A DNA stretch of 64,000 bases from Marsupella aquatica (taxonomy: Eukaryota; Plantae; Marchantiophyta). A program made the translations under genes and the position numbers. Of this stretch, positions 4,315 to 57,846 are shown piece after piece (position 1 is the stretch's first letter; the number at the start of each line of letters is the position of its first letter). The notes beneath the pieces were generated by a model. The model was not told the DNA's origin. It did not search any database and saw only the letters and a list, made by a program, of their open reading frames with translations. The stretch lies in the NCBI GenBank assembly GCA_973895155.1, contig OZ316897.1, forward strand, positions 10,067,832 through 10,131,831, read 5' to 3'.

Positions 4315-4559
4315 CCTGGGGGGGTCACTATATGAAGGGTCATACATCACGTGCGACGGTTTGGGTCATTTATGACCCCCCTAAGTCACTTTCTAGAAAG
4401 TTGTACAGCACCAATCATGTGATGACACGTATGCATTTTGGAATTAAACAACCCTATATTTCCATAGAAGGCTTAATAAGTCTTCCGCCAAAACCATTTA
4501 AATGGCCCTATACTTTGTCGCACATGATATGCCACTTCCATGGAAGTGACCCCCCCAAG
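4315..4559. repeat. Imperfect 43-bp inverted repeat pair (4315-4357 / 4517-4559); related motif copies at ~18286-18330 and ~24312-24355
   Basis: cctgggggggtcact...catcacgtgcgac versus gtcgcacatgat...agtgacccccccaag; the gtcgcacatgat core recurs at the other two sites. Confidence 0.6.
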
Positions 4560-19937: not shown

Positions 19938-20343
19938 GACACTGATCAGGGAAGGATATACCAACTTGGATCAGGGAAGAACTTGCCTACATACAAAGTG
20001 CACTATTAAGGGCATATTATATACATAAGTCAATGCACATCCATCGCACATTACATCAATCCAACACACACAACATAAACAATTCTATTACACCATGAAT
20101 GATTAAATTCCGCCATTCATTTAAAAACCCCTAAAAGCATTTTCATTTCAAAGAACTTTTATTGGATTCTGAACTCAAAACTCCCCTCAAAATGTGCTTG
20201 TATGTCATTTACAAACCAAACCTAAGGTTTAAAGTGCAACCCTAATCCCGCAAATACCTTTGAGAGATACCAAGCCATAGCTTTGAAAATAGGCAAAGCT
20301 AACTATATAAGACATAGAAAAACTAAACCTAGAAAACCCAATC

Positions 20344-23300: not shown

Positions 23301-23640
23301 ACCATTACCATGTTGAATAAAACCTTCAAAATGAAGGAACTAGGCAATACTAAGTTTTGCATAGGCTTACAACAAGACACCCACTAATTGTTTTGAAGAG
23401 AATGCAACCTGTATTCAACAAATAACATGTGGATTTATCAAGGCCGACAGCATCAAGCACATCGCGCTGAAATTCTTCTTCACCCACGAGCTTCAAGGCC
23501 ACGACATCCAAGTGACGCAAATTTCAAGTGCGACAAACTGCGCTGATCTTATCACCAAGGCGCTGACACCTGCGGCTCACCAATGCCATTGCCATGCAAT
23601 TGGCCTCCGCCGATAACGCCATTTGATGACCACCGATTGA
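20344..23640 (+). pseudogene. Copia gag-pol (gag, protease, integrase, RT, RNase H) with stops, frameshifts and two internal deletions
   Basis: Bianca-like gag start (MATLEKLSFLTLNLDGSNYLAWSLD), degenerate zinc knuckle, IIDSGTTHSIL protease, IHADVCGP / IRVDNAGEF integrase, LDVATAYLYG / AIYGLKQ / IYVGDL RT, and an RNase H tail (KHIALKFFFTHEL ... ADLITKAL). Most of gag is missing, and the RT end is fused to mid-RNase H at ~23380. Confidence 0.92.
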
Positions 23641-25253
23641 CACCAATCACAGCCATGATTCTATTTGACTTTCTCGCCAGGAGGATCGACCGGCTGTACT
23701 CTTTTTCCTTCATGGACATATCTGTTTTTTCTCTACTACCCTAGTAGAATTGTTTCTATTGTACATTAGAGCCACTAAAGGTTTTAACGAGGCAGTCCAC
23801 CTCCTTGGTCGATGTACCATGCATAATCATAAGCATGATGATTTTTTTTTGTCTAGCTCTAGGACTAGTCTAGATTGCCTTCATAATTTCCATTATGTAG
23901 CCAAGGGGGAGTGTTATATATGAGTTATCTAGCCCTAGACTAGACCAGAGACTCCATACCATGGTTAAACTTTAACCACACCTGTTCACATTCACACCTA
24001 TATAAACAGGACCATGACTTCAACATGGAATCCTGATTCATTCTTCAGCTCATCGTCTCCTAATAGTTTTCAGTGAGAGTTAATACTCACACTCGGGGGT
24101 CTCACTATATGGATGCCTCCATATCACCTGCGACGTTTTTAAGCCTTGGACCCCCTAAAATGAAAAAAATTCAACCCTTATAAAGTTGGAATATTCCAAA
24201 AATTTGCTTATAAGGACTCTAATGTCCTTATAAGTCTCAAAACTTGATTTAAAAGACCCTATTGTTCTTCTGAGAACATTCTTAAGTCTTTCCTTTGAAC
24301 CAATAAAATGACCCTATACTTTGTCGCACATGATGTGCCATTTTTGTGGAAGTGAAACATCCGAGTACTCACATTATTTTACTCGCATTTCAAGCCCCAA
24401 AACTATTAGAGCAAGACTATCCTGAGTGAGTTTTGACAGTAATAGTTGATTTTGTATATAAAAAGTTATATGTATTTTTGGTTACTTTGAAAAATTTCAC
24501 CCTCATCCATTTCTTGTCTGCCCTCAATGAAGTTCATGGTAGGCTTTGGGTTCCCACTAACGCGTGCAAATGTTGGCGTGCATGAATGAATGAATCTTAT
24601 AAAAAACTCTCTAACTAAGATTCATTTTTTCAAATAGCTCTTTATCCAAAGAGAGAAAGTGGGTGTCATCCATTCTAGATGATAATCTTGGGTCCGAATG
24701 TCATGCAGAAATTGTTTTAAGAAAGTCATGTTCTTGTTAGTTCATAATTCTTCAGGGTCTCATGGCTGGATTAGTTAGGTGCTTCTTTTTGTCTTGTTTT
24801 TAATCATTAGCCAAGGATGCTACTATTTAACCCTACAGAACAAGCACTGGTCTGGTTGTGGAGTATTTTATCTCACTTATAAAGTAGTTCATGACTATTG
24901 TAGAGTATTTTCTGGCTAACATTCCCCCATAGTGCATTAGATGTTCACGAATGAAACATTATTTTTAAAATTTTCAGCCTGAGTATCATTATAGTCTGCC
25001 TGTAGTTTAGGTAAGTGATTGGCTATTTTTAACCCACAAAACATTGCCTGCCCCCACTTGCGTCATTTGTCCCTTTTGCATTGGTGGCTTCCATCCCCTT
25101 GCTTGGTATTGATGGGCCCTAAATTTCAAACATTAGTGAACGTTGGGATAGAAGGGTTTTGTAAACCATTCCTTTCCAATTTGATAAAAGAAACAACTCC
25201 TTCTAGTGTGAACTTACAACCAAATTTGTGATCGAAGTACTTGTTGGGCACTT

Positions 25254-26120
25254 ACTAGATGTGGCCACTGCATACCTCTACAACTAGACGTGGGCTACCT
25301 ATCCGACACTGATACGGCTAAATCTCAAACTGGGTATGTTTTCACCATAAGCCGCACTGCATTCTCCTGGAAGAGTGTCAAGCAGACTATCACCACTACC
25401 TCTTCTAACCACTCCAAGATAATTGCCCTACACAAAGCCAGCCACCAAGCTGTGTGGCTCTGCTCCTTCCTTAATCATATCCACACTAACTATGGCCTAA
25501 ACCCACTAAAGGAGCCTACTAATATCTTTGAAGACAATGCAACCTTTATTCAGCAGATCAAGCATGGCTTCATCAAGGGCAACCGCATCAAGCATAGCAC
25601 GCTGAAGTTCTTCTTCACCCACGAACTTCACGGTCGCGACATCCAGGTGACACATATTTCAAGTTTGACAAACTGCATTGATCTCTTCACCAAGGCACTG
25701 ACTCCTGCGGTTCATGATTGCCACTGCCATGTGATTGGCCTCCGTCAATTACGCCATATGATGACCGCCGACTGATGCACACAACCGCCATGGTTCTACT
25801 CACTTTTCTTGCCAGGAGGATCGACTGACTGTACTATTTTTCCTCTAGGGCCATATTTTTTCCCTCTACTATCCTGGTAGAGTTGTTGTTACCTCAATCT
25901 AGCGCCGCTAAAGGTTTTCACGAGGCAGTCCACCTCTTTGGTCGATGTAACATGCATATCTATAAGCATGATGATAAATTATGTTTTGTCTAGCTCTAGG
26001 ACTAATCTAGATTGCCTTCATAATTCCCATTATGCCGCCAAGGGGGAGTGTTATGAGTCCCCTAGCCCCAGACTAGACTAGAGTCACTATACCATGGTTA
26101 TACCTTAACCATGCCTGTTT

Positions 26121-26196
<76 letters not shown>
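25254..26196 (+). mobile_element. 3' fragment of a related Bianca-type Copia (RNase H, 3' UTR, PPT, interrupted LTR); the LTR is completed at 29728-29755
   Basis: LDVATAYL fused directly to GYLSD...SQTGYVF...SWKS RNase H (25290-25775); 3' UTR colinear with 23640-23911; PPT 26040-26048; LTR starts TG at 26049 and resumes ttcattctt...ttaaca after the nested element. Confidence 0.88.
26121..26194. repeat. Compound (AC)n(AT)n microsatellite inside the interrupted LTR
   Basis: Directly visible; occupies the position of cacacctatataa in the related LTRs. Confidence 0.95.
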
Positions 26197-26198
<2 letters not shown>

Positions 26199-29100
26199 TT
26201 ATACCCTAACTAGACTCCATGGTTACCTTAACCATAGTTACCATATAGGATAACTCGGACGGAGACTATATAAAGAGATGCACCCATTCATTCTATAGAG
26301 AGGAATCTCATTATCATTTCCCACATCATTCCTCAACACGTTATCAGCACGACTCTAGACCAGCTGAGCTTGATCATGAATTGTTTTTAGGAATTTCCCT
26401 ATGGCTATGATGAATGAATGTTCTCTCAAGGATTTCCAAGTTATGGAGGAGAATTGAATTGGGAGTGAGAAGGCTAGTAGTTTGAACCACCAAGAGAACA
26501 TGAGTCACGTTGAAGCAACAACAGGATGTAGCATTGTGGTCGCGCCGAGAGCAAGCTTATGAGGGCTGTGATATGATCAAAAGAAATTTTGTTTTGAAGG
26601 GTGATTCTGATCGAGTTCAGCCGCGCTGCTTCCTTCTACCCAACCAGGCCAGATCAACCTAAATCACTCGAGGCGATGAGTTGACAACCTTAACAAGAGG
26701 CAGAAAGAGAAGAGCAGAGACCGGAAGCCAAACAGAGACAGCCTTGAATGAAGCCGAGTGGATCGAGAGCAAATCAGGACCTGATCAGGATCATAAGAAA
26801 ATTTTTCAAAACCCTAACCTCATAAGGGACGAATGCAGGCGCCTTCTCTTTCCCTAAATTTCACAATGTTTCTCAACCGCTGACAGTTTCTTGTTGGTCG
26901 ATCTGCGAGCCATAAAGGATGAAAGGAAATGCCCATTACACACGATCGAGTGAAGTACAGGCATTACAAGAGCCCAAACATGGATGTTGAATTGGTCATT
27001 TGCTGATTCAATGAAGATTCCAATAAGAGCCATTTGATACAGTCGTATCAAATTGGAGAAGATAGAAACAAATGTCGTGGAGGAAGAACATCTTGGCTTT
27101 GGTTGTGAACGTACGGGTGATGGCATCCAACGAAAGAAACGAGTCATCGTTGTGGGGTCTAGATCTGATAGCATTTTCTGAATCCTAAATATGGAATGTT
27201 GTGCCTGTCCAAGAATGAGCCTGAGAAGCTGATCGCAATCAAAGAATGAGCCAAAGCGACAAGTGAGATTTCAAGAGACACACATGAGTGACTTAAACAT
27301 GCAACATTCAATCTCAAAATCCTCGAGAAAAACTCGAACACCAGATAAGTGCAACCCTCATTAAATGCACAGTATAGTAAAGAGTTTCTGAAATACAAAT
27401 GCTTGGGTGCACTTATCCAAAGACAAGAGAATCCCATATGTTTCAGTGCAAAATCTTCATTTTTGAAAAACTATCCATAAATGCATCAACTGGTTTAGGG
27501 AAATTACATGTCACTTGTTGAATTCGCATACATTAACATGCCTTACATGTGCAACACATGCTTTACATGCATTTGACATCTTTACATGTCATACCACCCT
27601 TACTTGACTTTGCACATTGGAAATAATGGTTTTATACCAAATACCTCTACTTTCCATTTACAAAGTGGTTGTTACACCCATTTCAATCACAAAATGGTTT
27701 TTACACCATTTTACACCCCTAGTTTACAGCTAATGATACCATTCTAGATTATACCTCATGACACCAGTTTACACTGGTGTATGTCTTACCATTGTATAAT
27801 CCCTGCTTTACATTGGGTTTATACTTGTTTACACTGGTTACACCAGATTACACTTGCTTATAGCATTTACACTGGTTTACACCAATTTACACCATCAGGG
27901 GGAGTAAACTTTGGTCCATACACTTTTTGTGTGTAAATTGACCATTTACAACTTTTACACCAATTGACATGGGTTTACACCCATTTACACCCTACATTAG
28001 GGCAATATCTTACGTAAGGGTCTTATCCTCATGGTCTTTACACCATAAACAACTCAAACGAGAGCTTTTATAGCCATTGTTCGGTGGGATGATAGTTTTT
28101 AAGTATGGAACTAATACCATACCTTTAACCATGCTCTATGACCTAGTTTTTGAGGTATTTTGGTAAGGTATAGATTTTTTGAGATCCAGTGATCGATGGC
28201 AGATATGTTTCTCACGAAAGATCCAGAATAATCTAAGGTATAGTACTTCAGGTTAGTTCCATGACCTTAGTTCCCGGCCATATCCAAAAGCGGATAATCA
28301 ATAACCCTTTAGGGGTCTAACTGCGAATATTTAGAAACCCGAAGTTAACTCAAATCAGAATGAGTAATGAGGGGTTAATATGGGCAAACCCCATAACTTT
28401 GTCCGGTCCAACTTAATTCTAGCTTTCAACTATAATATATGCATAAAATGCATATTTAGGGGAGAAAGTTTATTTTCTCAAACCCCAATCACACTTGATT
28501 TACCCACTACGAGTACATTTTGGTACTTGGTCATTAAGTGGGACCTTTTGACTATCACTAGCTCTAAATTATTTTTTTCCGGAGTTGTTTGACGTTTATG
28601 AATATCACTTTACCTCCGCAAGATAGCGAATCATTTTGAGCTAGCATTTTTCTGTGCTGTGACACACATGGACGTTCGACTGAATGTTTGGATTCCACAG
28701 GGTTATTTGTGAAGTTATATTGACTTGACACTTTTTGTCAAAATATGAGAACTGCAGACGTGCAGGGCAGACGTGCCATATTATACACACACCTGCTGGT
28801 GTTGTGAATGCACACCCTTTGGTGCTGCAGATTATTTTTCATATAAAAACTATTTGATACTACATGTTTTTGAAATCTAAGATTGAGAGATTTCTTTGTG
28901 TGTCGACTACACACGCTTGCGAATTGTGCATTTTGCACAAGAACCCTCTATTTAAGAATCTAATTAGGAGTCCTTGAACTCTAAGGGAGAGTTTCGATAT
29001 TTGAGTTTTACGAGAATAATATATTCCTCGAAACCTTGTTTTGAGGGGGAGATCATATTTTTTGGATTTTTTACATCCCATACTTTACGCACTCAGTTGC

Positions 29101-29722
29101 ACGAGATGACATTATTTATTATTATACTTTACACTTTGCACAGATGAGCCACGAACAAGTGATTTTATGATAATAACTTAATTACTAACCATTTTTTCAT
29201 ATATGTTTTAATTTGTATTCGATGCGAGGATGTATGTGCGGATATATGCGTGATGGTGAGCGATTTGGAGACATGTCGCGTTGTTGTTGAGTCGTTGAGC
29301 ATACGACAACTTGTTCATTTTGACGGAGTGGAGTTGTTGCTGTTAACTCCACATACCACCGGATTCACTTGAGGACCGACAGGGCTGTACTCTTTTTCCT
29401 TTAGAGCCGAGATATATATATTTTTTCTCTGTTACCTTGATAGAGTTTTTAGAGCTGTTAAAGGTTTTAACGAGGCAGTACCTTCCTCATTTGTACTCAA
29501 ATCATGCAATTTTATAAGCATGATAATCTAGTTAGAAGACTTTTTGTCTACATAGTTATCACTATATAGCCAAGGGGGAGTGTTATACCCTAACTAGACT
29601 CCATGGTTACCTTAATCATAGTTACCGTATAGGATAACCCGGACGGAGACTATATAAAGAGATGCACCCATTCATTCTATAGAGATTAATCTCATTATCA
29701 TTTCCCACATCATTACTCAACA
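26197..29722 (+). mobile_element. Non-autonomous LTR element (LARD/large-TRIM-like) of Bianca type, nested in another LTR
   Basis: 142-bp TG...CA LTRs at 26197-26338 and 29581-29722 (6 mismatches); TSD TATGA at 26192-26196 and 29723-29727; PBS cgttatcagcacg at 26339-26351; PPT 29572-29580; no gag/pol motifs found internally. Confidence 0.92.
27625..28050. repeat. Degenerate array of short TTTACAC-core repeats inside the non-autonomous element
   Basis: Many copies of (t)ttacac(c/t), locally spaced 10-11 bp (e.g. 27828-27895). Confidence 0.75.
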
Positions 29723-39181: not shown

Positions 39182-41742
39182 TAGATCCAGCCCATTCTAA
39201 CCAATCAGATTGCAAGGATGAGTTTTTCAATTTACAGGAAAATATTAATCAAAATTCCAATGGAAAATTACTAGAGGGCCTCTCATTTGTATGACACCAA
39301 ACTTTTAAGAGAAGGAATCTTTGTCCAAAATACTCTTCTGGGACACAACAAGTCTCAATACAAAGGGATGGGTGAGGATTAGGTAACTCAAATGATTTTA
39401 AACTGGGTATTGTTTCCTCTGCCACCAGCCTTCTTGAGATCTCAATGCAAAGTTCAAATGTCGGGGCCTGATTTTTGATTTGGGCTCTAGGTTGTCATTT
39501 GGCTATCTGATTTTCCTTGTTTCGTTTTCTTTGAAAAGTTGTACTATGTTCGTTGTTGAACTTTGGTTGATAAGAAGAAACATGCAAAGAACTAAAATGG
39601 GAACTTTGTTGTACAAGGAGGGCAAGAGAAAGACCAAAAATTGACTCAAGGAATGGGTTTCTGATTGGTTGGATTATCCTCTACTTCCTTATTCCTCTTT
39701 GTTTCCACAAGTTGGAGAGGTTTGGGTGCATGAACCCTCCCTTTATCAATTCCTTTCCTTTTTTACATGGAAAATTTTCATCCAGAGTACGTACTATTCT
39801 GCAAGGCACTTACCCACCCACACACACTCCATTCCAGACACCTAGTGTGAGAGCGGGGTTTGAACCTGAGACCTGGTCCGCTCCTTTCAAGGTGGGTACG
39901 TTGTGCTTGTGATCTTAGGTTGGCTTACAAGACATGGGGGCCCATTCTCTTGTTTCGATTCCCTCTAAAAAATAAAAATCTGGACTCTATAATGAGTGGA
40001 ATAGGCTCCAGTTTGCTTTTCAATAACTAGGGGGCCCATTCAGGTATAGTGTCCACCAACTCTACTTGACAAGCAGTGGGCCCAAGTAAGTGTTGGTGAA
40101 AGAGTGTTTATTATTTTGTCTAGAATTTTAGACCAACTCCTGAGGTGGTCCAACATTTTCAAACTTTGGCTCCTTGATTCAAGGGATCTGCATTTATTGA
40201 AGTTCATTTCAAAGATCTTTGGTCCAGAGTCTGTGTTTTAGAAGTGGCCCTCCAATTTGGTTTTGGTGAAAAAAAATGAGAGTGCCCCCACATCTTGTAA
40301 AGCACAAGTGAAAGGGAAATCTAGCAGCACAAGTGGTATGGGTTTCAAGCATGACTTTACAGGATCTCGTTTCCTACTAATAATTTTTTCTTTTGGAAAT
40401 AATGGGCCCAAAGAGGTCTTACCCTACAATCATTGAATTTCTTTCACCACCCCTTTGATCCTTTTGAGGGGGAGGGGGTGTGACTCGGTGCAAAAGTGTC
40501 CATTGTTCATTGATGATTGTTTGAAAAAGGTGAAGTCAGCGCAGGTGGGATCCCAACCTCAAACCTGTCCGAAGATAACGTAGTCAGGACTAAGGCCCAA
40601 CTCGCATGTGAAGGGTCCCAAGAAATGAGACCCTAAACTTCCATAATGTCAGGATATGTATGAACGCGAATTTCATGCAGCATCCCCCTCCAACGCCAGT
40701 CCTCACGCCAATTTTCCCGGGGTCCCAAGGGCAAGGGCCGGAAAGTTTCCGACCCTTGCAGGTTGCGACCTTCCATTCCCTAATAAAACAAAATGATTTA
40801 ACTGACACATGTCAGTCACTGAGGAAAGCAGCATATACAGTGTGTCTCTTCAGTTTCTGGTAGTCACCCTGCAAAGTAGGCCTGCATTCGATCATGCCTG
40901 GGAATGGTAGTGGAGTCACGCACTTCAAAGCTCTCTTTGAAGTGCTCTCTTGGTACTGCTACCGACCTTGCATCTCACAGAGTGATTGCGCCCCAAAGAG
41001 CAATCAAATTTGTTTGCGACAGCATTGAAATCTTTTGCTTCAGTAGTCTGCGATCAGCACGAGGGATCTCGACTCACAAGGCTAGCTACCGACACTGTTT
41101 TCGTCCTTACCAGGTACTTCTTGAATATACATGACAGTCTGAATGCCGATCTACAAATTGCAATTTCTCAAGTGTTGGAAGAACTAGTTCACAACGAGAC
41201 TTCAGTTTAGGCTATCAACTCAGTCACCAATTTCTGGTGCTTGCCAAAACGCCACGGATGACTACGGTCATGACTGTCTGTCTGCTCAGCCACAGACTCC
41301 ATCATCGCTGCCCAATTAAACCTCCATATTCTCAATTTCTGATTACTTCAATCTTTAAGCTCGAGTTCAAAGTCGGGTGTTTCGACCCTTACCATGCACT
41401 CCTTCGCATAACGTTCCGCTTTGTTGCTGGAGCACCTCCATAATGAAGGAGAGTAGAGGCAAATATATGTTTGTGAGCATCGATGATGAGACCGGGATAC
41501 ATTTACTCAAAATTGCTGCATCGATGATGAGACCAGGAGACATTCAGCCGAAATTGCACTGTGAGCAAGGTCGCGAGCTGGCAAGGAGGAAAGAGGACCA
41601 AGAGCTCACTCAGCTGTGGTTCCGTCGCTGTTATCCTAAGGCTTGCTGTCACCGATCTCTTATCGCTCGGGGTCACCCACCTTTACCCTTAGATGCGGGA
41701 GCCGCCAGCTTCTAAGTCGCAAAAATGTGTCGAATATCACTT

Positions 41743-41875
41743 CTAGTCGCAAAAATGTCTGTTGCACTTTCGGAGGCTGCACAATCAGCGATTTCGGAGC
41801 TTGCACAATCATGGCTGAACAAAATTGAATTCCAATGGCTTAGCTAAGAGCAATAGACCCCACAGAGCTATGGAC
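41743..41875 (+). repeat. Internal direct repeat, left copy (133 bp)
   Basis: Aligns to 46081-46215 with 7 substitutions and 2 single-base indels. Confidence 0.95.
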
Positions 41876-42037
41876 TACCGTCCTGAATCTGCCCTCCAGC
41901 TAGATAGGGACCTCCTTGCACAATTTTTGGCCCCCGCTTCTCCCTCTTTGTCTTTTCATTTGTCTATAATGTCTCTGTCCTCCTCGTCCCTTTGATTTAT
42001 TGGGGTTCAGATTCGTTTCAGGGGCAGGGACAACGCA

Positions 42038-42610
42038 ATGGCTTCCGGACATGACTTGGACGACCTTGCAAACGCATATTTGGGGAAGATACAGCAGGCC
42101 AAGGATCACTTCACACACCTGGAGTCGATGTTTGTGGAGCAGCTTTGGCCTGCTGTGCAAGCACAGATGTCAAGCTCCAAAAACCTAGGTCGTGAGGCCC
42201 TCCATCTCAAGCAAGAGAACGACAGGTTGAAAGGAGAATACCGCAAGGTCCGTGGGGAAAACACGGCTTTAGAAACCATGCAATCTGAGGTTGTTCAGAT
42301 TTTGCAAAGGAGAGCATTGAAACACAAGGCAATAGTTGCGGACAATGCATGCGATAAAAACATTGTCATAGGCACACGTGAACCTTTGGTTCCAATTTCC
42401 CCCAACCTTTCAAGGATTGGCACCCATAGCATAGAAGCAAGACAGACAACTATGGTGAAGGGCAAATGTGCACTTCCCTTGGTGTCTACTACACCCGAGA
42501 TGGGCAACCCTACCGGGCCAACAATGCATGGCCAGGATGTTACACCTTTGAGGCCCAGGAAGAAAACATGTGTGGAGAGTGATTCTCTTGGCCTTGGGCC
42601 TTCACCATAG
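42038..42610 (+). CDS. Third ORF of the Harbinger element; 190-aa protein with predicted helical/coiled-coil N-half, unknown function
   Basis: Uninterrupted ORF, ATG in good context (gcaATGG), heptad-like LHLKQENDRLKGEYRKVRGENTALETMQ, basic PRKK near the C-end, AATAAA at 42692-42697. Confidence 0.65.
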   Translation: MASGHDLDDLANAYLGKIQQAKDHFTHLESMFVEQLWPAVQAQMSSSKNLGREALHLKQENDRLKGEYRKVRGENTALETMQSEVVQILQRRALKHKAIVADNACDKNIVIGTREPLVPISPNLSRIGTHSIEARQTTMVKGKCALPLVSTTPEMGNPTGPTMHGQDVTPLRPRKKTCVESDSLGLGPSP

Positions 42611-42858
42611 AAAAAGTACCTTGTGCTTTTTTTTGGACATGCTTTCTAGGAAGTCCAAACTTTTGTAAAGTTTTCTTAAATTGTACAGTTTAATAAAGTT
42701 GTGGTGTGCTAATCAACACTTTCAGACATGTCATGCACATCTTATTTGTATCTTGACTTGAATGAGTTGTATCCATTACAAGAATTGGTTGTGTATTATG
42801 CCTTGTGAAATTCAGGAAGTGTTCCTTGACTTCCATTATTACTTGTGTGAGCATTCAG

Positions 42859-44075
42859 ATGGCAAGCCACAATGTGAGTCACTTTCCAGGCCATAGTGTG
42901 CCTCCACAAGAAGGTGTGCCATTCATTGACTTGGATCTCAACAACATTGACTTGGATCTCAACATCGGTACAGGCTCTACTTGTGCACCAGAACGTCCAC
43001 TGAAGAATAAGTTGCCGGTTTGGACGGACCAGGAGATGAAGGGTTTGATTACAGCAAAACAAAATGAACACCACAATGTTGTTATGGGCGGCTCTACACA
43101 ACAGAAGATGAGCGGCAGCAAGTTGAAATGGAAGGCAGTGGCAGCATTCATGAAGGATGAGGGATTCATTGAACCTATTCGAGATGCAGCATCTTGCAAG
43201 AAGAAGTGGCACATCATCGAGGACAAATTCAAAAAGATTTATGATTATGAGAAGAAAGAGAAGACGGGAGAAATTTCTTACTTTGACATGTCTGACATAG
43301 AGCGACGCCAGAAACGAATGCCCACTAATTTCTCTATTGACCTCTATGCAGAACTCTTGGGATGGTATGCACATGTTCCGCGCATCACCCCACCAAAGAA
43401 GTTTTTGTCAGATATATCCGGGATGAACCAACACCCAGACCAAGATCAATGTGATGTGTCGTCTGCAAGTGAGAAACCTGTTCTATTCATGATCATGAAA
43501 TTTGTTTGTTTCATTTGCATTATGCAAGAACTATGTTTGACTCAATTTTTGCTGAAAATCCTCAGTTTTCATTTGGACTTGACTGAGTTGTATCTTCATT
43601 TCACACTTTTGCTTGGTACATGCAAACACTAAAATATTGTACAGGTGATGATGATGTGGAGGTTGACGAAAACAGGTCTGCACCATCAAGCCAGACACAC
43701 TTCTCAAGGGGAACGCAAGAGAGTTCACAACACAACAACGAGACTACAGGTGGTATGGGGAGGCCATCATCCCCTCAGGACTTCTTTGGCCCACGCAATC
43801 GAGGTGTGAAGCGCAAGGCAGCCAAGTCTGGGAGCGACAAACAGGCATATTTGAAAAGCATGGCCAACAGTTGTGCTGAGATGGCCAAACATGATTTTGA
43901 AGCCCGAGAGCGTGAGTCTAACATCCGAGAGCGTGACACTCAAAGCAGAAAGGAGGAAGTGAATATTTTGGCCACAGCAATTACCGCAGCAGCAAACACG
44001 ACAGCCGAGCAGATGACACATTTCACTGAGGCCTTCATGCAAAAGATTGCAGGTTCTTCACGACCGTCTGAGTAG
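42859..44075 (+). CDS. Harbinger ORF1: Myb/SANT-like (trihelix) DNA-binding protein, 2 exons (42859-43468, 43645-44075), ~346 aa
   Basis: Three spaced tryptophans (WTDQEM ... KWKAVA ... CKKKW) and SYFDMSDIERRQKRMP motif; a phase-1 GT-AG intron at 43469-43644 joins the two track ORFs in frame; basic GVKRKA and helical C-terminus. Confidence 0.88.
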
Positions 44076-44300
44076 AGTATGAAGTACATAGTTTGTGTAC
44101 AGAAGCAAGTAATCTATGGATATGAAGTGCATCAATGCACGTTTAGTTAGACAGTACATGAAAACTTGTACAAACAAATTGTGATAACACTTTGATGCAC
44201 ACTTCACTTTCAAACTTTATTTAAAATATGCCAGAAACATATGTGGATAAGTTTAACTTTATTTGAAATATGCCAAGAACATATGTGAATAGGTTTGTGA

Positions 44301-45665
44301 TCATGGTCTATTATCTCTATGGGCAGCACAACCTGTTCGTTGTTCATGCTCCCACTCTCTCTCTGGCAACAAATGGTCCATCATTGCAATACGATAACTA
44401 CGTCCATTGTTATAATTCAAATGTACAGCAGGGGGACCACCAGGTTCATAGGGAGGGTCTGCATCTAAACCCCAGGCTGGATCATACACATCTCCACAAT
44501 CAATACGGATATTATGAAGCAGACATGCACAAGTAATGTAATGAGCTAGTCGATAAGGATGTGGCCTAAACATTCTACGAGAAACAAATCTCCAACTATT
44601 CTTCAATTGACCAAAAGCACGCTCCACGCACATCCTTGTAGAGCTGAGCATGTAGTTGAATTCGCTCTTTCGGGTATGCTCTCCCACAGCAGGAAAGGGG
44701 TTAAGCAACCAAGGAAAAACCGGATAACCAGCATCACCAATGATGTACTCTCCTGTAGTGAATCCACTTGGAGCCGTAAACACCGGGCCAGAGAGTTTGG
44801 TGTGGTGTCCCACAACATCGTTAAAAAAACCCGACACTCTCAGAAGACAAGAGTCTTGAATGCTGCCAGGCCATCCTGCAAACACATCCAAAAATCGAAG
44901 CCGACTATCACAAACAGCTTGCATGGAAATGCTCTGACCACGCCTATAGTCACGATAATCGATGGAATTTGTCCCAAGAGGTAACTCCACTTGAAAATGA
45001 GTGGCGTCAATTGCACCGCAGCAGTTTGGAAATCCTTGCAATTGTCGAAACTCTTCTTTCACCTGTGCCATGGCCTCTCCTTGTGGCCAACTCAAATGTG
45101 TCCCTCTTGCATGCCTAATTAATGCCTTCACAAATTGCCAAATGACATCAGAAATACATGGAACTGAAACCCCAAACATCTCAGAAAGTGTCAACAGCAA
45201 ACATCCACTGGCAAATCGGCGCAGAGCTATGGCAACTTGTCGCTCAACCGACAAGGTCCTATTGGTCAAATTCCGTAGGCCAGGTGGGGGTTGTGTAGTC
45301 AGATCTCCTCGAAGCAGGTCACAAATGTACACAAATGTTGCAGGTGACACGCGAAAGAAATTTTTGAAGCGAATTGGATCATCTTCGATCACATGCATAA
45401 GGTACCACCCACTCCATTCTCTTGATCTTGGCTCAATATAATTATGAGATAGAAGGCAATGATCTCTGGAAAATGCAAGTTCAATAGTCTGACGTAGTAG
45501 AAACAACTTTGCAAAGAGTGTACTGCCCACTTCACTTGACACTTGCCTGTGTTCCACAAAATAGGTAGCAACAAGACCAAACATGTGCGTTTGTTGCAAG
45601 ATCACTTGCTGGAACATGAAAAATGCTGAACAAATGATTTCCCATTCCTCATTGGAAAGAACCAT
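44301..45665 (-). CDS. PIF/Harbinger DDE transposase (HARBI1-like), 454 aa, intact
   Basis: FRVS..TF..IC HTH region, CCGAIDATH, QAVCD, GWPGSIQD, IGDAGYP, RMCVERAFGQLK..WR, CLLHN; catalytic D, D, E present. Confidence 0.96.
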   Translation of the reverse strand: MVLSNEEWEIICSAFFMFQQVILQQTHMFGLVATYFVEHRQVSSEVGSTLFAKLFLLRQTIELAFSRDHCLLSHNYIEPRSREWSGWYLMHVIEDDPIRFKNFFRVSPATFVYICDLLRGDLTTQPPPGLRNLTNRTLSVERQVAIALRRFASGCLLLTLSEMFGVSVPCISDVIWQFVKALIRHARGTHLSWPQGEAMAQVKEEFRQLQGFPNCCGAIDATHFQVELPLGTNSIDYRDYRRGQSISMQAVCDSRLRFLDVFAGWPGSIQDSCLLRVSGFFNDVVGHHTKLSGPVFTAPSGFTTGEYIIGDAGYPVFPWLLNPFPAVGEHTRKSEFNYMLSSTRMCVERAFGQLKNSWRFVSRRMFRPHPYRLAHYITCACLLHNIRIDCGDVYDPAWGLDADPPYEPGGPPAVHLNYNNGRSYRIAMMDHLLPEREWEHEQRTGCAAHRDNRP

Positions 45666-46080
45666 TTTTCAAAGTGTTGAAAGTGAAAAGTCCTGCAAAA
45701 TACACCAGAGAAAACAAACATGTGAATGAGGAAAAAAATTCAGAACAAGGAAAGACTCACATAAAGAAACAATATCATTTATAATGAGGAAAGACACGGA
45801 AAGAGAGATTTCTGTAGGGACAAAGAATACCGGTCACAATACTTACTAGTTATTAGATATTAATGAAAGTCACATAAACTAATGTGCCATGTATTTCATG
45901 CATGGCACAATGTCTGGAATTGGATACATGTACCTACTGTAGGTTGCAGTTTATTGGAAGACCCTAAGTATGATGATATATCTAAACAAAATGAGTATAT
46001 ATATAAACAAAATGCCTGCCTCCATAACAACGAGCACTACTGCTCTAACCTACGTGTGAAGGTCAAAAGGCATTTGAGAC

Positions 46081-46215
46081 CTAGTCGCAAAAATGTCTGT
46101 TGCACTTTCGAAGCCTGCACAATCAGCAATTTCCGGAGCTTGCACAATCATGGCTTAACGAAAATTGAATTTCAATGGCTTTGCTAAGAGCAATAGACCC
46201 CAGAGAGCTATGGAC
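46081..46215 (+). repeat. Internal direct repeat, right copy (135 bp)
   Basis: Partner of 41743-41875; followed by a local duplication of gaccccagagagctatg. Confidence 0.95.
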
Positions 46216-49200
46216 CCCAGAGAGCTATGGTTGGCATTTCTTCTTCTAACGATGGCAGCACCTATTTCAAGAACGGGTCGTAAATCGTCGGGGAGGTTTT
46301 GCGTTGACCTCATCTCCCTCAGGTCTTCATGTAGCTGCACTACGCCATCAGTGGGTTTAATTGCATGTCAAGACTGGTAGCTCAAACTGCAATGCGGGTG
46401 TTCTGGGTACGAACGCGAGTCCCGAAACAAATTGATGAAGCGCAAACGTCATTACTTCTGATTACAGAACTCTCTGCAACTTGCTGGGGTTGGGAGCGGG
46501 CGGCATAGATTTATCTTTGCTGAAGCCACTCGGGACTGCTGGAGTGCTGGAGAAATGCTACGCACACGGAGAAGAGCTTCCTGGAGGTTATTTCCTCCCC
46601 AAACCGAAATGACAACATCTACAAAGGAACCCTAAACGGGTGAATACGATTCACAGAGGCACATTCGGATTTGCAAAAGCAGAGCGCTGTTTTGGTTGCA
46701 ATTGGTGCAATTGGTGGGAACAAGGGATCGACGTGCTTTCTACTGTGCTACTGCTGTATCTGCTTCCTCGGATCCAGAGCCCATTTCCTCGTGTTGCATC
46801 ACACTGCGACGCTGAATTTGGAAGATTTACGATACCAGCCAATTTTTTAAGGTTGTTCTTTTTGCAAGTGTGGGTAATGTCACCTTGTGTAAAGGACGAG
46901 ATGCCAGGAAGATTCCTTATGTAAATGTTAATGTCGCCGAATTTAATGGTTTGCAAAGTCTATCTCTCTCTCTCTGTATATTACTCTTCCCTTTACGGAG
47001 CAAGGAACTTCAGAGAAAGAAAAAGCCAGAGAATGAATTAATGAATGTGAAACCCCCTGAACAAGTGATTGAATTGCCTTCTGGCAAAGCTTCACAGAAG
47101 ACAGGTAGACACAAATGCGGATGCTCACCGGACTCAAAGCTCACTTTAGATCGAAGCGTGAACTCTCCTTCCTTGTCCAATTGACTCCCTCACGAATCCG
47201 TCACATAGATTGTGAGAAGACGCAGTGCCTTCAGACAGACCAAAGCCGAGCCTCAGCTGAATGAATGAATCAGCCACTCTAGTAAATGAGTGCGTGAACG
47301 CCTTGAGCCAAACCAAATGCTTAAAACTGTGATGACGGTCTGTTCCCCCAGAATTTCGTCTCACCCATTCACCGAAATCTACCGCAAGATTCGACCTCTC
47401 ACACCCAGCCACTCTCACAGGAGAAGAAAGAACCACCGAATATTGGCGAACACGCGAGGACGGTCTTACTCTTCCCTTACGCGAATCCAATAGAAGTTCT
47501 TCTACTGCCTGTGCCAGACCACCGTAGACAGACTGCCTTCTGAGCGAGCCATTGATTTCATTAGAATGAATCGTCTTCGGAATAGAGTGTACATTTTTGA
47601 AAGGCGATGTATCCAGCTATTTGTTCATAAGACTCTTTGACTAACGTTCGACGTTCACAGTCATGGTGCTGTTCTTACCTCTGTGAAATTGAAACGGACA
47701 CAGAAAAACTTCCGATCGAAGTGGAACTTGTCAATCGTGAACTTCCTGATGTCCCCAAGTCGTAGCGCAATTCAGCAAAGCGATGCTGGAGCAGATTAGA
47801 GGTGAGCAACAGCCAATGTGAAAAGTCAGATAAGAACGGCAGCGCACGCAGTTTCGGAGGCAGCATTTTGCAGGGCCTCACACGAACTGGCTGCCGTGGC
47901 CTGTATAATCTGCAGAGGCAAACGACAAGCGCGGACACGTAACGGAATGTGCAGGTTGACACGTAGCAGCTTGGCAGATTTTGTGGGATAGCAGCCCTTG
48001 CTTTGCGCCTGCAGACTCGGGAGTGTTAAGGACGGTCTTCTAACATGCGAGTTGTCTCTAATACCGTCACATTCGGGAGTACATAGATAAAGTTTAGGGC
48101 AGGGATAATACAAAATACAGCTTTAGTGAGAGTAAAGGGACAAAGCGCAGAGGACGTGTTGTAAAATATGGTCTCATACTGGTTTTTGGTGGTTTTTGTT
48201 GGTTCCCCGATATAAGTCAGACAAACTGACAAGACAAAAAAGAGAGGCTTGTTCCAGGATAAACATGCTATGTCAGAGAAGTTATATGTAAATATAAGGG
48301 TGGAAGTAAGATATCTGTGGTGAGGGTAAAGCACGTATAGAATAACCCTCAAAACTAGCTTAAGAGCTGTTGACTCACAAAAACTCAGAGTTGGGTTTTG
48401 CGGAGGGTACCTTTGGATATGCTTTTAGCTGGAAGCATGTGACAATGAGAACATCTCAGTGATATAAGGCATCAGCATCGACTTCCCCATAGCCAAGCTC
48501 CCCCTTCCCTGTGAGCAATGCTCATCACTCATTGCTCACTCTGCACAGTGGACAACTGTGTAGGCAAATTTCTCAAGGACTTATTCATGAACTGCACATC
48601 AAAGGTGCACCTAGGCCCATCGCTCACTGTGCATAAATTTTACATTGCTCAGGAAGTCTCCATTGCAGCTCTCAAAAATTGAACACAGGAGCTCTGGGTG
48701 ACTAAGGGTTATGGCCCTCTTGGAAGCCTTGGGCAATTCGAACAGAACAATGTTTGCCCCCCTATTCGAACAGAAGAATGTTTATTTTGAGTTGGAAGGG
48801 AGGGTAACTCACCTTGAACCCAACTAAAAAAAAATAGACATGTTTCTCTTGAGTTGGAAGGGTAACTCACCTTCAACCCGAGTAAATAATAGTAGACTAC
48901 TCGCCCTGAGTCTACCACTGTACGAAAAACTCTAATTACACAAAATATTTTAAAAATGAGGTGATCATGATATACATCCGATTTATAAAACATTTCGAAA
49001 AACCCGTCCTGTATTAATTACTAGGTATTCTTAAGAGGCTTGTTCATGCAAAGCTAGGCAATACGACGGCATAATTATACAGTAAAACAAAAACTATTAT
49101 GCAAGGAACTCTGCTGCTGAACGGTATAAGCAGCAACCAACATTGGGAGAAGGTCAACTCCTGTCAGTCAGTCACCAAATCTAGATTTCGTCTGAGGCAT

Positions 49201-50626: not shown

Positions 50627-52470
50627 ATGGCTTTAAACAGAGCTTGCCAGTGGGATCAGGCGTCCACTACTTTCGGTCTGGAACTTGGAGACCCAACTCG
50701 CCTACGAACTCAAGCGCTGGAGCTTGATCCAGAGCCTCCACTCCCGTTTGGCTGGGAGAAATGTTTTGATTTGAAGGTAAGTTTTGGTTTGTTTCTTCTG
50801 CAAAGTTCTCCCGTGAAAGCCTCCCAGCCTTTGTAATTAGTCGTGACAGCGTGGGCACGCTTCTATGTTGTGCTGCATCATGCTGAGAATATGTTTAGTT
50901 TGTTCACATGGAGTTGTGCAGTTGTGCGACTTTCAACGGAAGGCCCGTGTTAATTAAATGGAGTCTTGTACGTAGACCAAAGTTTTGAAGGACAGAAGTT
51001 TGTTGAAAAGAGTAGAAGGAGGAAATTGTACGTGCGTTTTAAATTCACCACCAATGAAAATGAATTGACAGTTGAGGGCCTGCTCGTGCTGTTTGTGTTT
51101 TGGCTCAGACCGGGGTAATATTCTTCAAAAACACGAGTACTGGAATAAGAACGGGGACAGATCCCCGTGTACAAGTCAAGCTGCAGCAGCAGCAGTACCA
51201 GCAGCAGAAGAATGATGTGGATTGTGAGGCGTGGCGAGGTCTTTCGAGATCGATTGACACCGATGCTTTGAATCGTGCCGGGGATAAAGGGATGGACTGG
51301 ATGGACAGATTACAGAATTTCAGAGGTTTGGAGGCGAGCACGATTGACGAGAAGGTCTCAAAGTGGAGCCAGAATTATACTTCCAAGAAGTTGCCCCCAC
51401 TCCTCTCCTTGAAGTCCACCGACAGTCTCCCGAGTCTCGAGCTTTCGCTGAGGCTGGACGGCCCCCAGGCTCGAGATTCATCGAGTCTGCAGCTCTTGAC
51501 CTCGGGTGACAAGCCTGGTAGTTTCAATGGGAAGGCGGCGCATGTGAAATTGGAGCAGCTCGAGCAATGTCGCCAGGATTTCCTTGGTCCCAATCACAAC
51601 ATGGGGCCGTTCCCGTCGAATTCTGTAAAGGTTAAGGAGGAGCCAACTTCGGATACGTTACGTTGGGGGGACCAGTTGCCAGTCGTTTGCAATTTATCAT
51701 CAACATTTCCCATCTCATCCTCTAGCTGTAAGCGAGAGGGCACCGAGACATCCGCCACTGCAGCACTGGAGCAGCCGGAGTTTCGAGACTTGCTAGGCCC
51801 GAGATACGCCATGGGACCTTTCTCTTCGAATGCGGGGCAAGGATTGGCGGAGTCCATGCCTTCTCCCATGGACCAGCTGGCCGGCACTTGTACATTGGAC
51901 AAGGTCCTGCTGGCCCTGGAGCGAACGCAAACTCAACCTGATGCTGCCATGAACAATTCTTCGACGAAAACTGGTACTCAAAGTGGCAATTCTTTGAAGG
52001 CAACACTTGCCCCTTCCCCATTGCGACTTCAACCTCCATCCGCGAAGTTGTCATCAGGAGCAGCGTCTCTCTCACCAACCACCTCTGACGCGTCCTCAGC
52101 CGTGAGCTCCAAATCGTCCCTTCATTCATCTACAACTCCATCCGTGATGAGTTTCCAAGGAGAAGAGCTAGATGATTTGGGAGGGCACGGCTCCAGCGCA
52201 GAGGCCAAGACTCGGTCAAACCGGCTTCCGACCTCTACGTCTGCTGATCCGAAAGTTGAAGATGGAGTAGAAGCCCCCATCACGTTGGTGGCAGTTGGCT
52301 GCATGTCTTGCCACATGTTCGTAATGCTATCGAAGGATAATCCCAGCTGCCCAAGATGTGGCAAGACTGGTTTGCTGGACATCTCTCCTCCCACGAAGAG
52401 GCAACGAAAGGAGAATTCCCCAGTGGACGCGGAGAGCCGGAGACATCGCATTGCGTCGTCTCCACCATGA
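50627..52470 (+). CDS. CURLY FLAG LEAF 1 (CFL1)-like WW-domain protein with EAR-like motif and C-terminal Cys4 zinc ribbon; exons 50627-50776 and 51109-52470, ~503 aa
   Basis: WW domain split by a phase-0 GT-AG intron (LPFGWEKCFDLK|TGVIFFKNTSTG...DPR), LELSL (LxLxL), CTLDKVLLALER, LVAVGCMSCHMFVML...CPRC. An additional upstream coding exon cannot be excluded. Confidence 0.85.
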
Positions 52471-55469: not shown

Positions 55470-55820
55470 TGAAAACAAGGTGAAACCAACATTTTAAAGT
55501 AAAGTAAAGTATTACGTTTGAAACTCATGGGAACAAGCTATACAATTGATCAAGGTGAAACAAACATTATGAAATATAGTGAAGAATTACAGTTTGAAAC
55601 TCATAAGAACAAATGCTACTCTTGATCAAGGTGAAACAAATATAATGAAATATAGTGAAGATTTACATTTGAAAACTCATAGGAACCAGACCTAAGTTTG
55701 ATCAAACTGAAACAAACATTATGAACTATAGTAAAAGAATTATGTTTGAAATTCATAATAACAAGTGCTACACTTGATCAAGCAAACAAACAAACATAGC
55801 AAAGAATTACATTTGAAACA
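55470..55820. repeat. Minisatellite, ~76-bp unit, about 4.5 copies
   Basis: tgatcaa anchors at 55547, 55623, 55699 and 55775. Confidence 0.9.
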
Positions 55821-56894
55821 AGCAATATGCTTGAGGGACCTTCTCCCATAAAACTTTCCTTGATCAGCCCCGCGGAACTTTTTACAAACTCAACACCCTC
55901 TAAATGAGCCATACAAGATAGATGTTCTTGTAGAGGTTCTTCCAAAGTGAGATTTTGGATAATTGGATCAAACTGGGAGAACCATGATATAAGCATTTGA
56001 ACAAAGAACTCTGATCAGTTGAACCATGCATGACTACATGGTTTTCTACCACAAATTATGTCTCACCAAACCCACAGGCATTGAATGGGGCTAGTACATT
56101 GTTGTCAACATTGGTAAGATGGGCTGCTAATCCCGCTGCTAATTATCGCGCCATCCAAACTGCAAGATGAAGGTCATTGCAAAGTGAAGACATTCATGTG
56201 AATTCCTTCTGTTTCATAAAACTTCATTCAATGTTTTGGCCTTAATCTCCCAATAGGTCTTTTTGAGGGTTGAGGTGTGGACAAGTTCCCACAAGGTTCC
56301 ACAAGGCCTGCACTGTGTGTGGGGTCTACCAACAGTTTGACACCACATCCAAATGGCATGAGTGAGCAAAAACATACCCTTGGTGAATGCTGAGTGTGAC
56401 ATGAAGACAATCTCCATATTGTCTTCCAAAACCACTAAGGTTAGCCATTTAGCATCGCCCTAATGGTATGCGTGAGCAAAACTTACTCTTGGTGAAGAAA
56501 AATGCTGTGTGAATGAAGACAATTATCTAATGTCTTTCAAAAACAGTATTGCAACTGCTCAGAACTGCATACATGCACTCTTCACAACATATGTTGCGAC
56601 ATGGAAAACTATAGCACAAAAAGTCAGGGACGGAAAACTATGCAGTTTCTTTGTTTAGAAGAACTCAATGTATGGATTTATTAAGATGCGGTTGAGTTTA
56701 TATTAAAAAAAATGTGGGAACTGATCATGGGAAGCTTTTCCGGCAGATATCTTTCCATTTGCAACTCTTTTGTCTTCTCGGGTCTTTCCCTTTCCCTCCC
56801 TTTATTAGGTCTTTTTGCCTTTGCAATCTTGTCACCCGGTTTGATGTCCCTGTCCTTTTGGCATTGTGATATACTATTTGCAACTTATACGAAC

Positions 56895-57045
56895 AAACGC
56901 TACACTTGATCAAGGTGAACAAACATTATGAAATATAGTAAAGAATTACATCGAACCAGCGCTACACGTATCAACGTGAAACAAACATTACGAAAATAGT
57001 TTTAAATTACTTTTGAAACTCACAAGAAACAGCGCTACACTTGCT
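56895..57045. repeat. Second block of the same ~76-bp minisatellite, about 2 degenerate copies
   Basis: gctacacttgatcaaggtgaacaaacattatgaaatatagtaaagaattac matches the unit at 55470-55820. Confidence 0.85.
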
Positions 57046-57846
57046 CTTTGTCAAAACACCCAGAATCTCATCTTAGTTGATATAGCCATAAAATATGTAG
57101 GGGAGTCTGTTGTAAGAGATTAATCGTGGACTGGCTTGTGGATTCATGTAAATACGAGCACAGCTACGTGACAATGAGATGGGCCTAGAGATTCTTGCAG
57201 AATTGAGCTTTAGAGTGTGGTAGGTTGTCGCTCATCCTGGGGGTTATGAATTTGTTGCATAAGCATATGAGGGATGCACCGGATGGCAAAAAGGGCTCTA
57301 CATTGGAGCGCATTTGTTTTGGTTTGTCTTGGTCTTGTGGGAACTTGGACAAACTTCGACATGGCCAGGATACTCCGCAATAAATTTTTCCTAACACAAG
57401 CAGAACCATATCATATAGTTTCCATATCCTTTGCCAGGATGCATGCACGCTTTATTAGCATCTAAAAGCTCGCCAATCTTCCCAGACCATTTGTCACTCA
57501 TCTGATGATCATACAGCAGTGATATCAGTCCTGCTTTTTTTCTTGGCAGTTTTCATGCCGTGAATCTTTGCAACCAACCTCCAAGCGACTGATTACCACT
57601 ACATGCGGATGTGAACAGCTTCCTATCCTTAGAATACACTTGACTTTCTTCAATGCAGAGGCACTGCTAGGCCAATAGGTGATCCTTCACTAGAATGGAG
57701 ACCACTCCATTCAACAGACACTTGATTTCCAAGGCATCTTGTTTTTGCTATTATACATGATTCAATCATTCTACCTGTGCTGCCTTCCCTACTAGAATTC
57801 ATGACACCCTACAAGTTCAAAGTAATATCAAGCCTACACTTCCTGG

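Follow-up and report, generated by a model that had tools for sequence, protein, structure and literature searches.

A PIF/Harbinger DNA transposon that looks autonomous, as judged from its sequence, is present in a liverwort genome within the 64,000-nucleotide stretch analysed here (the window). Harbinger elements move when a Myb/SANT protein binds the ends of the element and recruits the DDE transposase, which excises the element and reinserts it at TAA with duplication of 3 bp. The present element is for the most part an ordinary transposon; its structural peculiarity, a minor one, is a pair of internal direct repeats and an orphan reading frame (ORF3). The whole explanation favoured by us, namely a Harbinger with a lineage-specific repeat duplication, a possible upstream regulatory block and an orphan ORF3, is given a probability of about 0.55.

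Ends and identity of the element

The features of the element are listed in Table 1. Directly after the left TAA (40591-40593) the element begins with GGCCCAACTCGCATGT; it ends with ACATGCGAGTTGTCTC, after which TAA stands at 48059-48061. The inverted ends are identical at 13 of 16 positions and have a perfect core of 12 nt, which occurs just twice in 64 kb, both times at the ends of the element. The predicted limits, TAA duplication and gene order were borne out almost to the base, and the boundaries are confirmed by the homologous ends of a sister family in Calypogeia fissa. The terminal inverted repeats are present where they had been placed; the sole correction to the layout is that they are short and imperfect, and for this reason they are absent from the list of the repeat finder.

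PIF/Harbinger elements are recognized by a 3-bp TWA target-site duplication, short terminal inverted repeats, an intact transposase of the DDE_Tnp_4 / Plant_tran type and a separate Myb/SANT-like DNA-binding gene within the element. Here, TAA lies on both sides, the ends are short inverted repeats, the DDE_Tnp_4 transposase is intact and a separate Myb_DNA-bind_4 gene is found inside the element. The identity claimed in the original prediction thus stands. In the rest of the 64-kb window no related fragments were found.

Table 1. Features of the transposon, with positions in the window.
Feature	Position	Strand	Length, evidence or remark
Whole element	40594-48058		7,465 bp; TAA on either side
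Left target-site duplication TAA	40591-40593		read directly
Left terminal inverted repeat GGCCCAACTCGCATGTGA	40594-40611	+	homologous to C. fissa end GGGCCAACTTGCATGTGA
Left non-coding arm	40612-41742		largest arm ORF, 41377-41715, without Pfam domain; no Rfam family
Left direct repeat	41743-41875	+	133 bp; two tandem 24-nt units at 41764 and 41788
Candidate TATA-like motif TCTATAAT	41963-41970	+	88 bp after left repeat; about 70 bp before ORF3 ATG
ORF3, orphan frame	42038-42610	+	190 codons (190 aa); open reading frame
Myb/SANT-like exon 1	42859-43468	+	Myb_DNA-bind_4, Pfam PF13837, E 4.3e-8
Myb/SANT-like exon 2	43645-44075	+	tblastn with P0121 residues 208-286
42-bp tandem repeat, two units	44213-44296		short spacer between converging genes
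Transposase, DDE_Tnp_4	44301-45665	-	454 aa; Pfam PF13359, E 6.6e-28, full profile
Candidate promoter motif TATATATA	45996-46003	-	78 bp from right repeat; about 330 bp upstream of transposase ATG
Right direct repeat	46081-46215	+	135 bp; two tandem units at 46102 and 46126/7
Right non-coding arm	46216-48040		ORFs without Pfam family; no Rfam family
Right terminal inverted repeat	48041-48058	-	reverse complement GAGACAACTCGCATGTTA; matches C. fissa right end GAGCCAACTTGCATGTGA
Right target-site duplication TAA	48059-48061		same TAA as at left end

Transposase and Myb/SANT-like genes

All the catalytic residues of the transposase (D220, D311 and E348) are present on alignment to the conserved positions. 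The protein is 76% identical to P0001 of C. fissa, and at the DNA level the identity to this family is about 70-72% across the whole ORF. The whole ORF is conserved in comparison with both C. fissa copies, with dN/dS of 0.11-0.12; over the transposase and Myb genes the values span 0.11-0.20. Both genes have thus evolved under purifying selection.

The three tryptophans of the Myb domain are all there. Exon 1 shows 51% identity to residues 1-202 of the annotated C. fissa protein P0121 and holds an in-frame, perfect tandem duplication of 21 bp (42924-42964). A putative intron at 43469-43644 (GT..AG, with the GT donor at 43469) would leave the exons in frame, and its position agrees with the two-exon C. 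fissa model. The Myb and transposase genes converge, being on the + and - strands respectively. All three ORFs had been described as open, and every one of them is. Antisense to the Myb gene runs an open frame of 192 aa, as long as ORF3.

Comparison with the Calypogeia fissa family

The closest relative is a two-gene Harbinger family of about 5 kb in the liverwort C. fissa (assembly GCA_965154635.1). Two copies were compared (loci L001, 8412-13545, and L123, 8613-13524), which are 93.7% identical and 9 Mb apart; one 300-bp miniature derivative is also present, and all three members show the TAA duplication. Traits of mobility, that is copies at unrelated sites and a non-autonomous derivative, are shown at sequence level by this sister family.

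The two families have the same order of converging genes, a two-exon Myb gene (about 50% protein identity) with a shared intron position, the TAA duplication and homologous inverted ends with the core CAACTYGCATGT, those of C. fissa being 25 nt. Unlike the present element of 7.5 kb, the C. fissa elements have shorter arms, and their transposase frame, open here, is broken in both copies. They carry tandem arrays of 20 nt only upstream of the transposase, 170-450 bp from its ATG. They lack both ORF3 and the direct repeats flanking the gene cassette, and therefore both are taken as lineage-specific additions.

ORF3

The element had been described as a three-gene Harbinger. The frame of ORF3 is indeed open, but it has no relatives and is missing from the sister family. 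It belongs to no Pfam or NCBIfam family; no relative was found by a word search of 5.8e9 clustered proteins or among 1.84e9 (1.84 billion) representative proteins, and no homologue in the C. fissa copies. A three-gene Harbinger calls for a third ORF that is conserved or under purifying selection, and neither C. fissa nor the protein databases provided one. ORF3 is thus not a conserved third Harbinger gene.

In 1000 shuffles, an ATG-ORF of 190 codons or more came up twice. AF2 predicts a helical hairpin at residues 5-106 with two long helices (pLDDT 85-93), followed by a disordered tail. By the predicted helices and the shuffle count ORF3 looks protein-like; its codon score is the highest of the six frames, yet weak. 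ORF3 is an orphan and probably young reading frame, a candidate gene on purely intrinsic grounds.

The direct repeats and their surroundings

Direct repeats of about 133 bp, about 93% identical and enclosing all three ORFs, were recovered as predicted: of the 135 columns of their alignment, 7 are mismatches and 2 are one-base gaps (identity 93.3%, E 4e-55), and their starts are 4338-4340 bp apart. The sizes given for the arms (1149 and 1843 bp) and for a single-repeat product (about 3.1 kb; 7465 - 4338 = 3127 bp) hold as well. The tandem units within each repeat are 24-25 nt long (TTTCGGAG..TGCACAATCA). The edges of the repeats are sharp, the homology ending abruptly on both sides, and sensitive blastn found no similarity between the flanks. 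Judged by its outline in the sequence, the repeat is a discrete module. A third copy of the block is absent from the 64 kb. The repeats, whose edges read CTAGTC..ATGGAC between unlike flanks, are bordered by neither inverted ends nor a target duplication; an LTR-type or miniature element would show TG..CA or inverted ends together with a target duplication. The right repeat is followed by a 17-nt slippage repeat, to 46230. Between the two repeats there are 7 substitutions and 2 indels in 133 bp, whereas the coding sequence, about 3 kb, has no breaks; the duplication is therefore probably older than the insertion of the present copy.

The left arm carries a 41-bp tandem repeat of two units (41477-41557) and, at 41715-41728, a partial copy (14 nt) of the start of the direct repeat. 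In the right arm a lone site at 47848, which is 210 bp away from the right end, weakly matches the repeat unit (17/24). Apart from the 12-nt end core, no similarity between the two arms was found.

TATA-like motifs are frequent in AT-rich DNA, and those listed in Table 1 are putative promoter elements. On each side of the cassette the outermost gene start is preceded by a TATA-like motif, and the repeat lies 78-88 bp further out. The original prediction had the repeats upstream of gene starts and suggested a shared promoter. They are indeed found beyond the outermost gene start on either side, close to TATA-like motifs, but, the repeats being direct and the genes converging, each faces its gene in the opposite sense, and a classical directional promoter cannot be shared.

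Proposed origin and possible role of the repeats and ORF3

In the explanation favoured here, the repeats go back to the duplication, specific to this lineage, of a block containing two tandem 24-nt units; the copies are dispersed and sharply delimited and would stand outside the conserved transposition machinery. The duplication may have come about in an ancestor of the present copy by a copying error associated with repair, such as template switching in gap repair. One copy would thereby have been placed outside the ORF3/Myb side and the other outside the transposase side, and the region downstream of the duplicated block may be where ORF3 arose. The present role of the repeats, if any, would be that of an upstream regulatory block acting independently of orientation. 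Their position relative to the TATA-like motifs hints at such a role, as do the reiterated 20-nt motifs upstream of the C. fissa transposase ATG. Any function of the repeats or of ORF3 is hypothetical, and for the repeats a neutral leftover is almost as likely as a regulatory block. As a family trait the repeats rest on one copy, which could be a one-off chimera of two diverged copies; such a chimera would also account for the 7% divergence of the repeats. Little probability, about one chance in ten, is given to the far-reaching scenario of a repeat layout inherited in an active lineage, where the upstream block would co-regulate both sides and drive a newborn ORF3, and the repeats would shed the cassette to give 3.1-kb non-autonomous copies.

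A somewhat less probable alternative is that the repeats arose as a neutral by-product of repair or replication and have no function, with ORF3 a chance or very young frame. The absence of both from the closest family is consistent with this, as are a repeat motif not reiterated elsewhere in the element, a repeat orientation unsuited to a shared promoter, the lack of ORF3 relatives, its weak codon score and an equally long frame antisense to the Myb gene. Chance would not readily explain a block made of tandem units whose copies lie symmetrically beyond the two gene starts, close to TATA-like motifs, nor the rarity of so long an ATG-ORF in the shuffles and the confidence of the predicted helices. 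An unlikely alternative is that the repeats record assembly or loss, through homologous recombination between a one-repeat, non-autonomous 3.1-kb element and a repeat-bearing cassette, or through regular removal of the cassette by recombination or single-strand annealing. Two 133-bp direct repeats of 93% identity are a workable substrate and the arithmetic holds, so that repeat-mediated loss of the gene cassette is possible as a mechanism; but the 64-kb window shows neither a single-repeat derivative nor a junction or an extra copy, and the C. fissa derivative, a simple element of 300 bp, is without such a history. It is more doubtful still that the repeats bind the Myb protein of the element, for autoregulation or as an internal enhancer of transposition, as had also been proposed. 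Short motifs in several copies are a typical feature of factor-binding arrays, and the weak unit match lies near the right end. For Harbinger elements, however, binding of the Myb partner is reported at terminal or subterminal sequence (PMC13668399, PMC2836001). No reiteration of the 24-nt unit is seen close to the ends here, and the subterminal regions have just the 12-nt core in common; the proposed Myb site is therefore without support.

It is highly improbable that the 133-bp block represents a small mobile element, dispersed independently and inserted here twice: it has neither inverted ends nor a target duplication, both copies are symmetric and in the same orientation, and the 64 kb holds no third copy. 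Least credible is a domesticated, ALP1/ALP2-like host locus in place of a transposon. Most database matches to the transposase are ALP1 proteins, its nearest named relatives (40-46% identity). In angiosperms, ALP1 retains only one of its three catalytic residues; ALP2 is without the three tryptophans and lies apart from ALP1, and inverted ends are absent from both genes (PMC4671723, PMC7282668). The same two papers supply the marks of a domesticated pair, namely absent ends, genes apart, loss of catalytic or DNA-binding residues and a position conserved between species; by the first three, the present pair is not of the domesticated type. It keeps the DDE triad and the tryptophans, its nuclease and Myb genes are adjacent, the inverted ends and TAA duplication are in place, and its sister family exists in multiple copies and has a miniature derivative. 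The transposase falls outside the ALP1 clade in an unrooted tree (support 100/99), and there the transposon clade adjoins the ALP1 clade. A domesticated locus is thus refuted by the ends, the TAA duplication, the intact residues, the adjacency of the genes and the multicopy sister family.

Significance and relation to known Harbinger systems

If the repeats and ORF3 are inherited and functional, a DNA transposon would have acquired a further gene through duplication of a regulatory block of its own, and long internal repeats of this kind could yield non-autonomous derivatives in one step. The present value is modest: a well-delimited, apparently intact liverwort Harbinger, and a candidate active element for bryophyte genetics. 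Since its transposase belongs to a mobile clade beside the domesticated ALP1 genes of land plants, it also offers a useful comparison for studies of ALP1 domestication.

Rice Ping/Pong with mPing and zebrafish Harbinger3_DR likewise pair a Myb-like DNA binder with a separate DDE transposase and have a 3-bp TWA duplication, short inverted ends and miniature derivatives, the last seen here in the C. fissa sister family (PMC2836001, PMC13668399). The present element differs from classical PIF/Harbinger elements by an additional orphan ORF and by internal direct repeats of 133 bp, which are set more than 1 kb inside either end. Its transposase is closer to the DDE_Tnp_4/ALP1 type than to the Pong-type Plant_tran, with profile scores of E 6.6e-28 and 2.9e-11 respectively.

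Boundaries and insertion site of the element

The ends of the element were read directly at both sides. At the left, GGCCCAACTCGCATGT starts at 40594, directly after TAA; at the right, ACATGCGAGTTGTCTC runs up to 48058 and is followed by TAA. These are the boundaries at which the original prediction had placed the transposon. The contig itself comes from a plant of liverwort type and is not human DNA. The terminal inverted repeats are identical at 13 of 16 positions, and their 12-nt perfect core occurs at these two sites only within the 64-kb window. The pair is missing from the repeat-finder list because it is short. No other fragments related to the element were found in the remainder of the window, and a search of the arms, the non-coding DNA outside the direct repeats, for Pfam and Rfam matches returned none. 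An interrupted host gene was also considered at the insertion site and rejected, as the frame across the reconstituted empty site matches no family and is non-coding-like.

Coordinates (window positions) of the features of the element and of its restored insertion site
Feature	Position	Strand	Description
Direct repeats	41743-41875 and 46081-46215		135 aligned columns; 93.3% identity, E 4e-55
ORF3	42038-42610	+	190 codons
Myb exon 1	42859-43468	+	two-exon model by comparison with P0121, the annotated Calypogeia fissa Myb protein
Myb intron		+	176 nt, GT..AG
Myb exon 2	43645-44075	+	in frame with exon 1
Transposase ORF	44301-45665	-	454 aa; DDE_Tnp_4 over full profile, E 6.6e-28
Stop-free frame, element removed	40510-40593 joined to 48062-48424	-	149 codons; spans insertion site

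Transposase and Myb genes in relation to ALP1 and ALP2

The catalytic residues of the transposase, D220, D311 and E348, are all kept. The leafy liverwort Calypogeia fissa supplies its best protein match (76% identity), and the remaining matches are mostly land-plant ALP1 proteins at 40-46% identity. An environmental relative (P0002), 49% identical, is encoded on a 5.5-kb contig (L002) whose architecture is uninformative. No identical product of either the transposase or ORF3 was returned by exact-product look-up. For the second canonical gene, a Myb_DNA-bind_4 domain (E 4.3e-8) was identified in a plus-strand ORF from 42805.

In an unrooted maximum-likelihood tree built with no outgroup, the transposases split into two groups with support of 100/99. 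One group comprises the window sequence, C. fissa and some environmental sequences. The other comprises Marchantia and Riccia, then Ginkgo, then angiosperm ALP1, in a branching order that matches plant phylogeny. In angiosperms, two of the catalytic residues are gone from ALP1; the ALP2 gene is not located next to ALP1, and its product lacks the three tryptophans (PMC4671723, PMC7282668). In contrast, the window element exhibits none of these residue losses and no such separation. The catalytic triad is intact, all three Myb tryptophans are present and the two genes are adjacent, so that a domesticated ALP1/ALP2 gene pair was rejected. As the ALP1/ALP2 losses do not apply, the element is therefore a transposon of a mobile clade adjoining ALP1. 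With the tree unrooted, mobile relatives of the ALP1 progenitor may persist in liverworts.

Two short tandem duplications were seen in and next to the Myb gene. A perfect 21-bp duplication at 42924-42964, in exon 1, gives an in-frame seven-residue repeat (IDLDLNN/IDLDLNI), whereas the C. fissa Myb has a single copy of this segment. Between the converging stop codons, a 42-bp tandem repeat of two copies (88% match) at 44213-44296 takes up the greater part of the 225-bp spacer; it may be a 3′ end region that the two genes share.

A sister family in Calypogeia fissa

A 5.1-kb element at a C. fissa locus (L001) has a converging gene pair as in the window and is flanked by TAA duplications. Its inverted ends are 25 nt long, with the core CAACTTGCATGT, one base off that of the window. 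A second copy, at locus L123, lies 9 Mb away and is 93.7% identical to the first from end to end. These relatives confirm that the Harbinger family is mobile and give independent support to the earlier assignment of the window element to Harbinger, which was right. At 13568-13871 of L001, 22 bp past the full-length element, lies a miniature derivative of 300 bp that shares these inverted ends and is flanked by a separate TAA duplication.

Comparison of the window with the C. fissa copies gives dN/dS values of 0.11-0.12 (transposase) and 0.14-0.20 (Myb exon 1), which indicate that both genes were kept by selection. Synonymous sites are saturated over this comparison; non-coding parts were therefore not expected to align, and no non-coding alignment was found. 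The C. fissa transposase genes (9420-10775 in L001, 11351-12678 in L123) are each split into two frames, broken at differing places. The C. fissa copies have thus probably decayed, while the window copy is intact.

In the C. fissa family, the stretch from the start of Myb to the closer terminus contains no ORF of at least 100 aa, ORF3 gives no tblastn match, and the genes are not flanked by a long direct repeat. On this comparison of sequences, the additions in the lineage of the window element are ORF3, the repeats and some 2.3 kb of extra length, the first two because the C. fissa family has neither.

ORF3 as a candidate gene

No relative of ORF3 was found in Pfam, NCBIfam, a word-indexed search or 1.84 billion representative proteins. 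Look-alikes in a protein atlas were sub-threshold only (scores of at most 0.86), where recognition is below the useful range. Intrinsic evidence lends ORF3 moderate support. When the non-canonical part of the element was shuffled 1000 times, a frame of at least 190 codons with an ATG start arose in 2 of the shuffled sequences, and the codon score of ORF3 is the top of its six frames, yet weak. A single-sequence AlphaFold model has long helices at residues 5-45 and 50-106 (pLDDT 85-93) and a disordered tail. Two derivations from the Myb gene were rejected: similarity to a diverged Myb C-terminal copy is absent, and the conserved Myb N-terminus begins at 42859 in both species, which leaves no place for ORF3 as a Myb first exon. 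ORF3 is given about an even chance of being a real gene. The label of a three-gene element, under which the transposon was originally described, is thus unproven, as ORF3 has no detectable relative and is absent from the C. fissa family. Overall, this is a transposon of ordinary type, apart from its orphan ORF and its lineage-specific internal duplication.

Structure, age and possible role of the direct repeats

The direct repeats that had been predicted are real, as their alignment establishes. The copies differ by 7 mismatches and 2 one-base gaps and lie 4338-4340 bp apart from start to start. Homology stops abruptly outside the repeat edges on both sides, and a sensitive comparison of the flanks gave none. 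With similarity confined to the block, the repeats were rejected as the best-kept part of a larger decayed duplication. A block without inverted ends and without flanking duplication was likewise rejected as an independent mobile insert. Each repeat includes two tandem 24-25-nt units, in which TTTCGGAG and TGCACAATCA are separated by 3-4 bases. A 17-nt slippage repeat closes the right copy, and a 14-nt partial copy of the repeat start is found 30 bp ahead of the left copy.

The repeats have diverged by 7 substitutions and 2 indels per 133 bp, and about 3 kb of coding sequence contains no frameshift or stop. Divergence at such a level after insertion should have given several frameshifts or stops. 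Their absence suggests that the duplication is probably older than the present insertion, and it would have been carried by a lineage with its genes under selection. Alternatively, the duplication may have used a sister element that had already diverged as its template, an event that would yield the divergence instantly.

The original prediction had also suggested that the repeats may be a promoter or a site for the Myb protein. The reported binding sites of Harbinger Myb partners are terminal or subterminal (PMC13668399, PMC2836001). Outside the repeats the 24-nt unit has a single 17/24 match, 210 bp from the right end, and the end core is the sole sequence common to the two subterminal regions. 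As the unit is confined to the repeats and not reiterated near the ends where Myb partners are reported, the reading as a Myb site is without support. The promoter reading draws on position. A TCTATAAT motif lies 88 bp after the end of the left repeat, with the ORF3 ATG about 70 bp further on. On the other side, a TATATATA motif precedes the start of the right repeat by 78 bp; on the minus strand, this motif is about 330 bp ahead of the transposase start codon. Reiterated motifs of 20 nt likewise precede the transposase gene in the C. fissa element. This symmetric placement of repeat and TATA-like motif is suggestive of a promoter or enhancer role, although TATA-like strings are cheap evidence. 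Since the repeats are direct and the genes converge, such a role would require an element that works in either orientation. No functional reading of the repeats is proven. A metagenome scan with a loose pattern of two spaced copies of a 10-nt motif returned 120 loci, all of them chance matches with no further similarity to the element.

Other features of the window

Repeat families of 300, 143, 142, 123 and 77 nt, 79-96% identical, recur every ~2.13, 3.4 and 5.1 kb at 18813-29722, a pattern suggestive of a mobile element that is duplicated in tandem or nested. A 76-bp tandem array of four units is present at 55512-57054, with two dispersed copies about 1.1 kb downstream. The G+C content falls to just 23% in the 2-kb stretch at 14001-16000, and the 2-kb stretch at 4001-6000 has a GC skew of +0.37 with an AT skew of +0.20. 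A 338-aa ORF at 260-1276 (-) has a weak aspartyl-protease match (E 0.007) and is possibly a retroelement remnant. A 456-aa ORF at 51100-52470 (+) contains a GIR1-like zinc-ribbon domain (E 1.5e-10).
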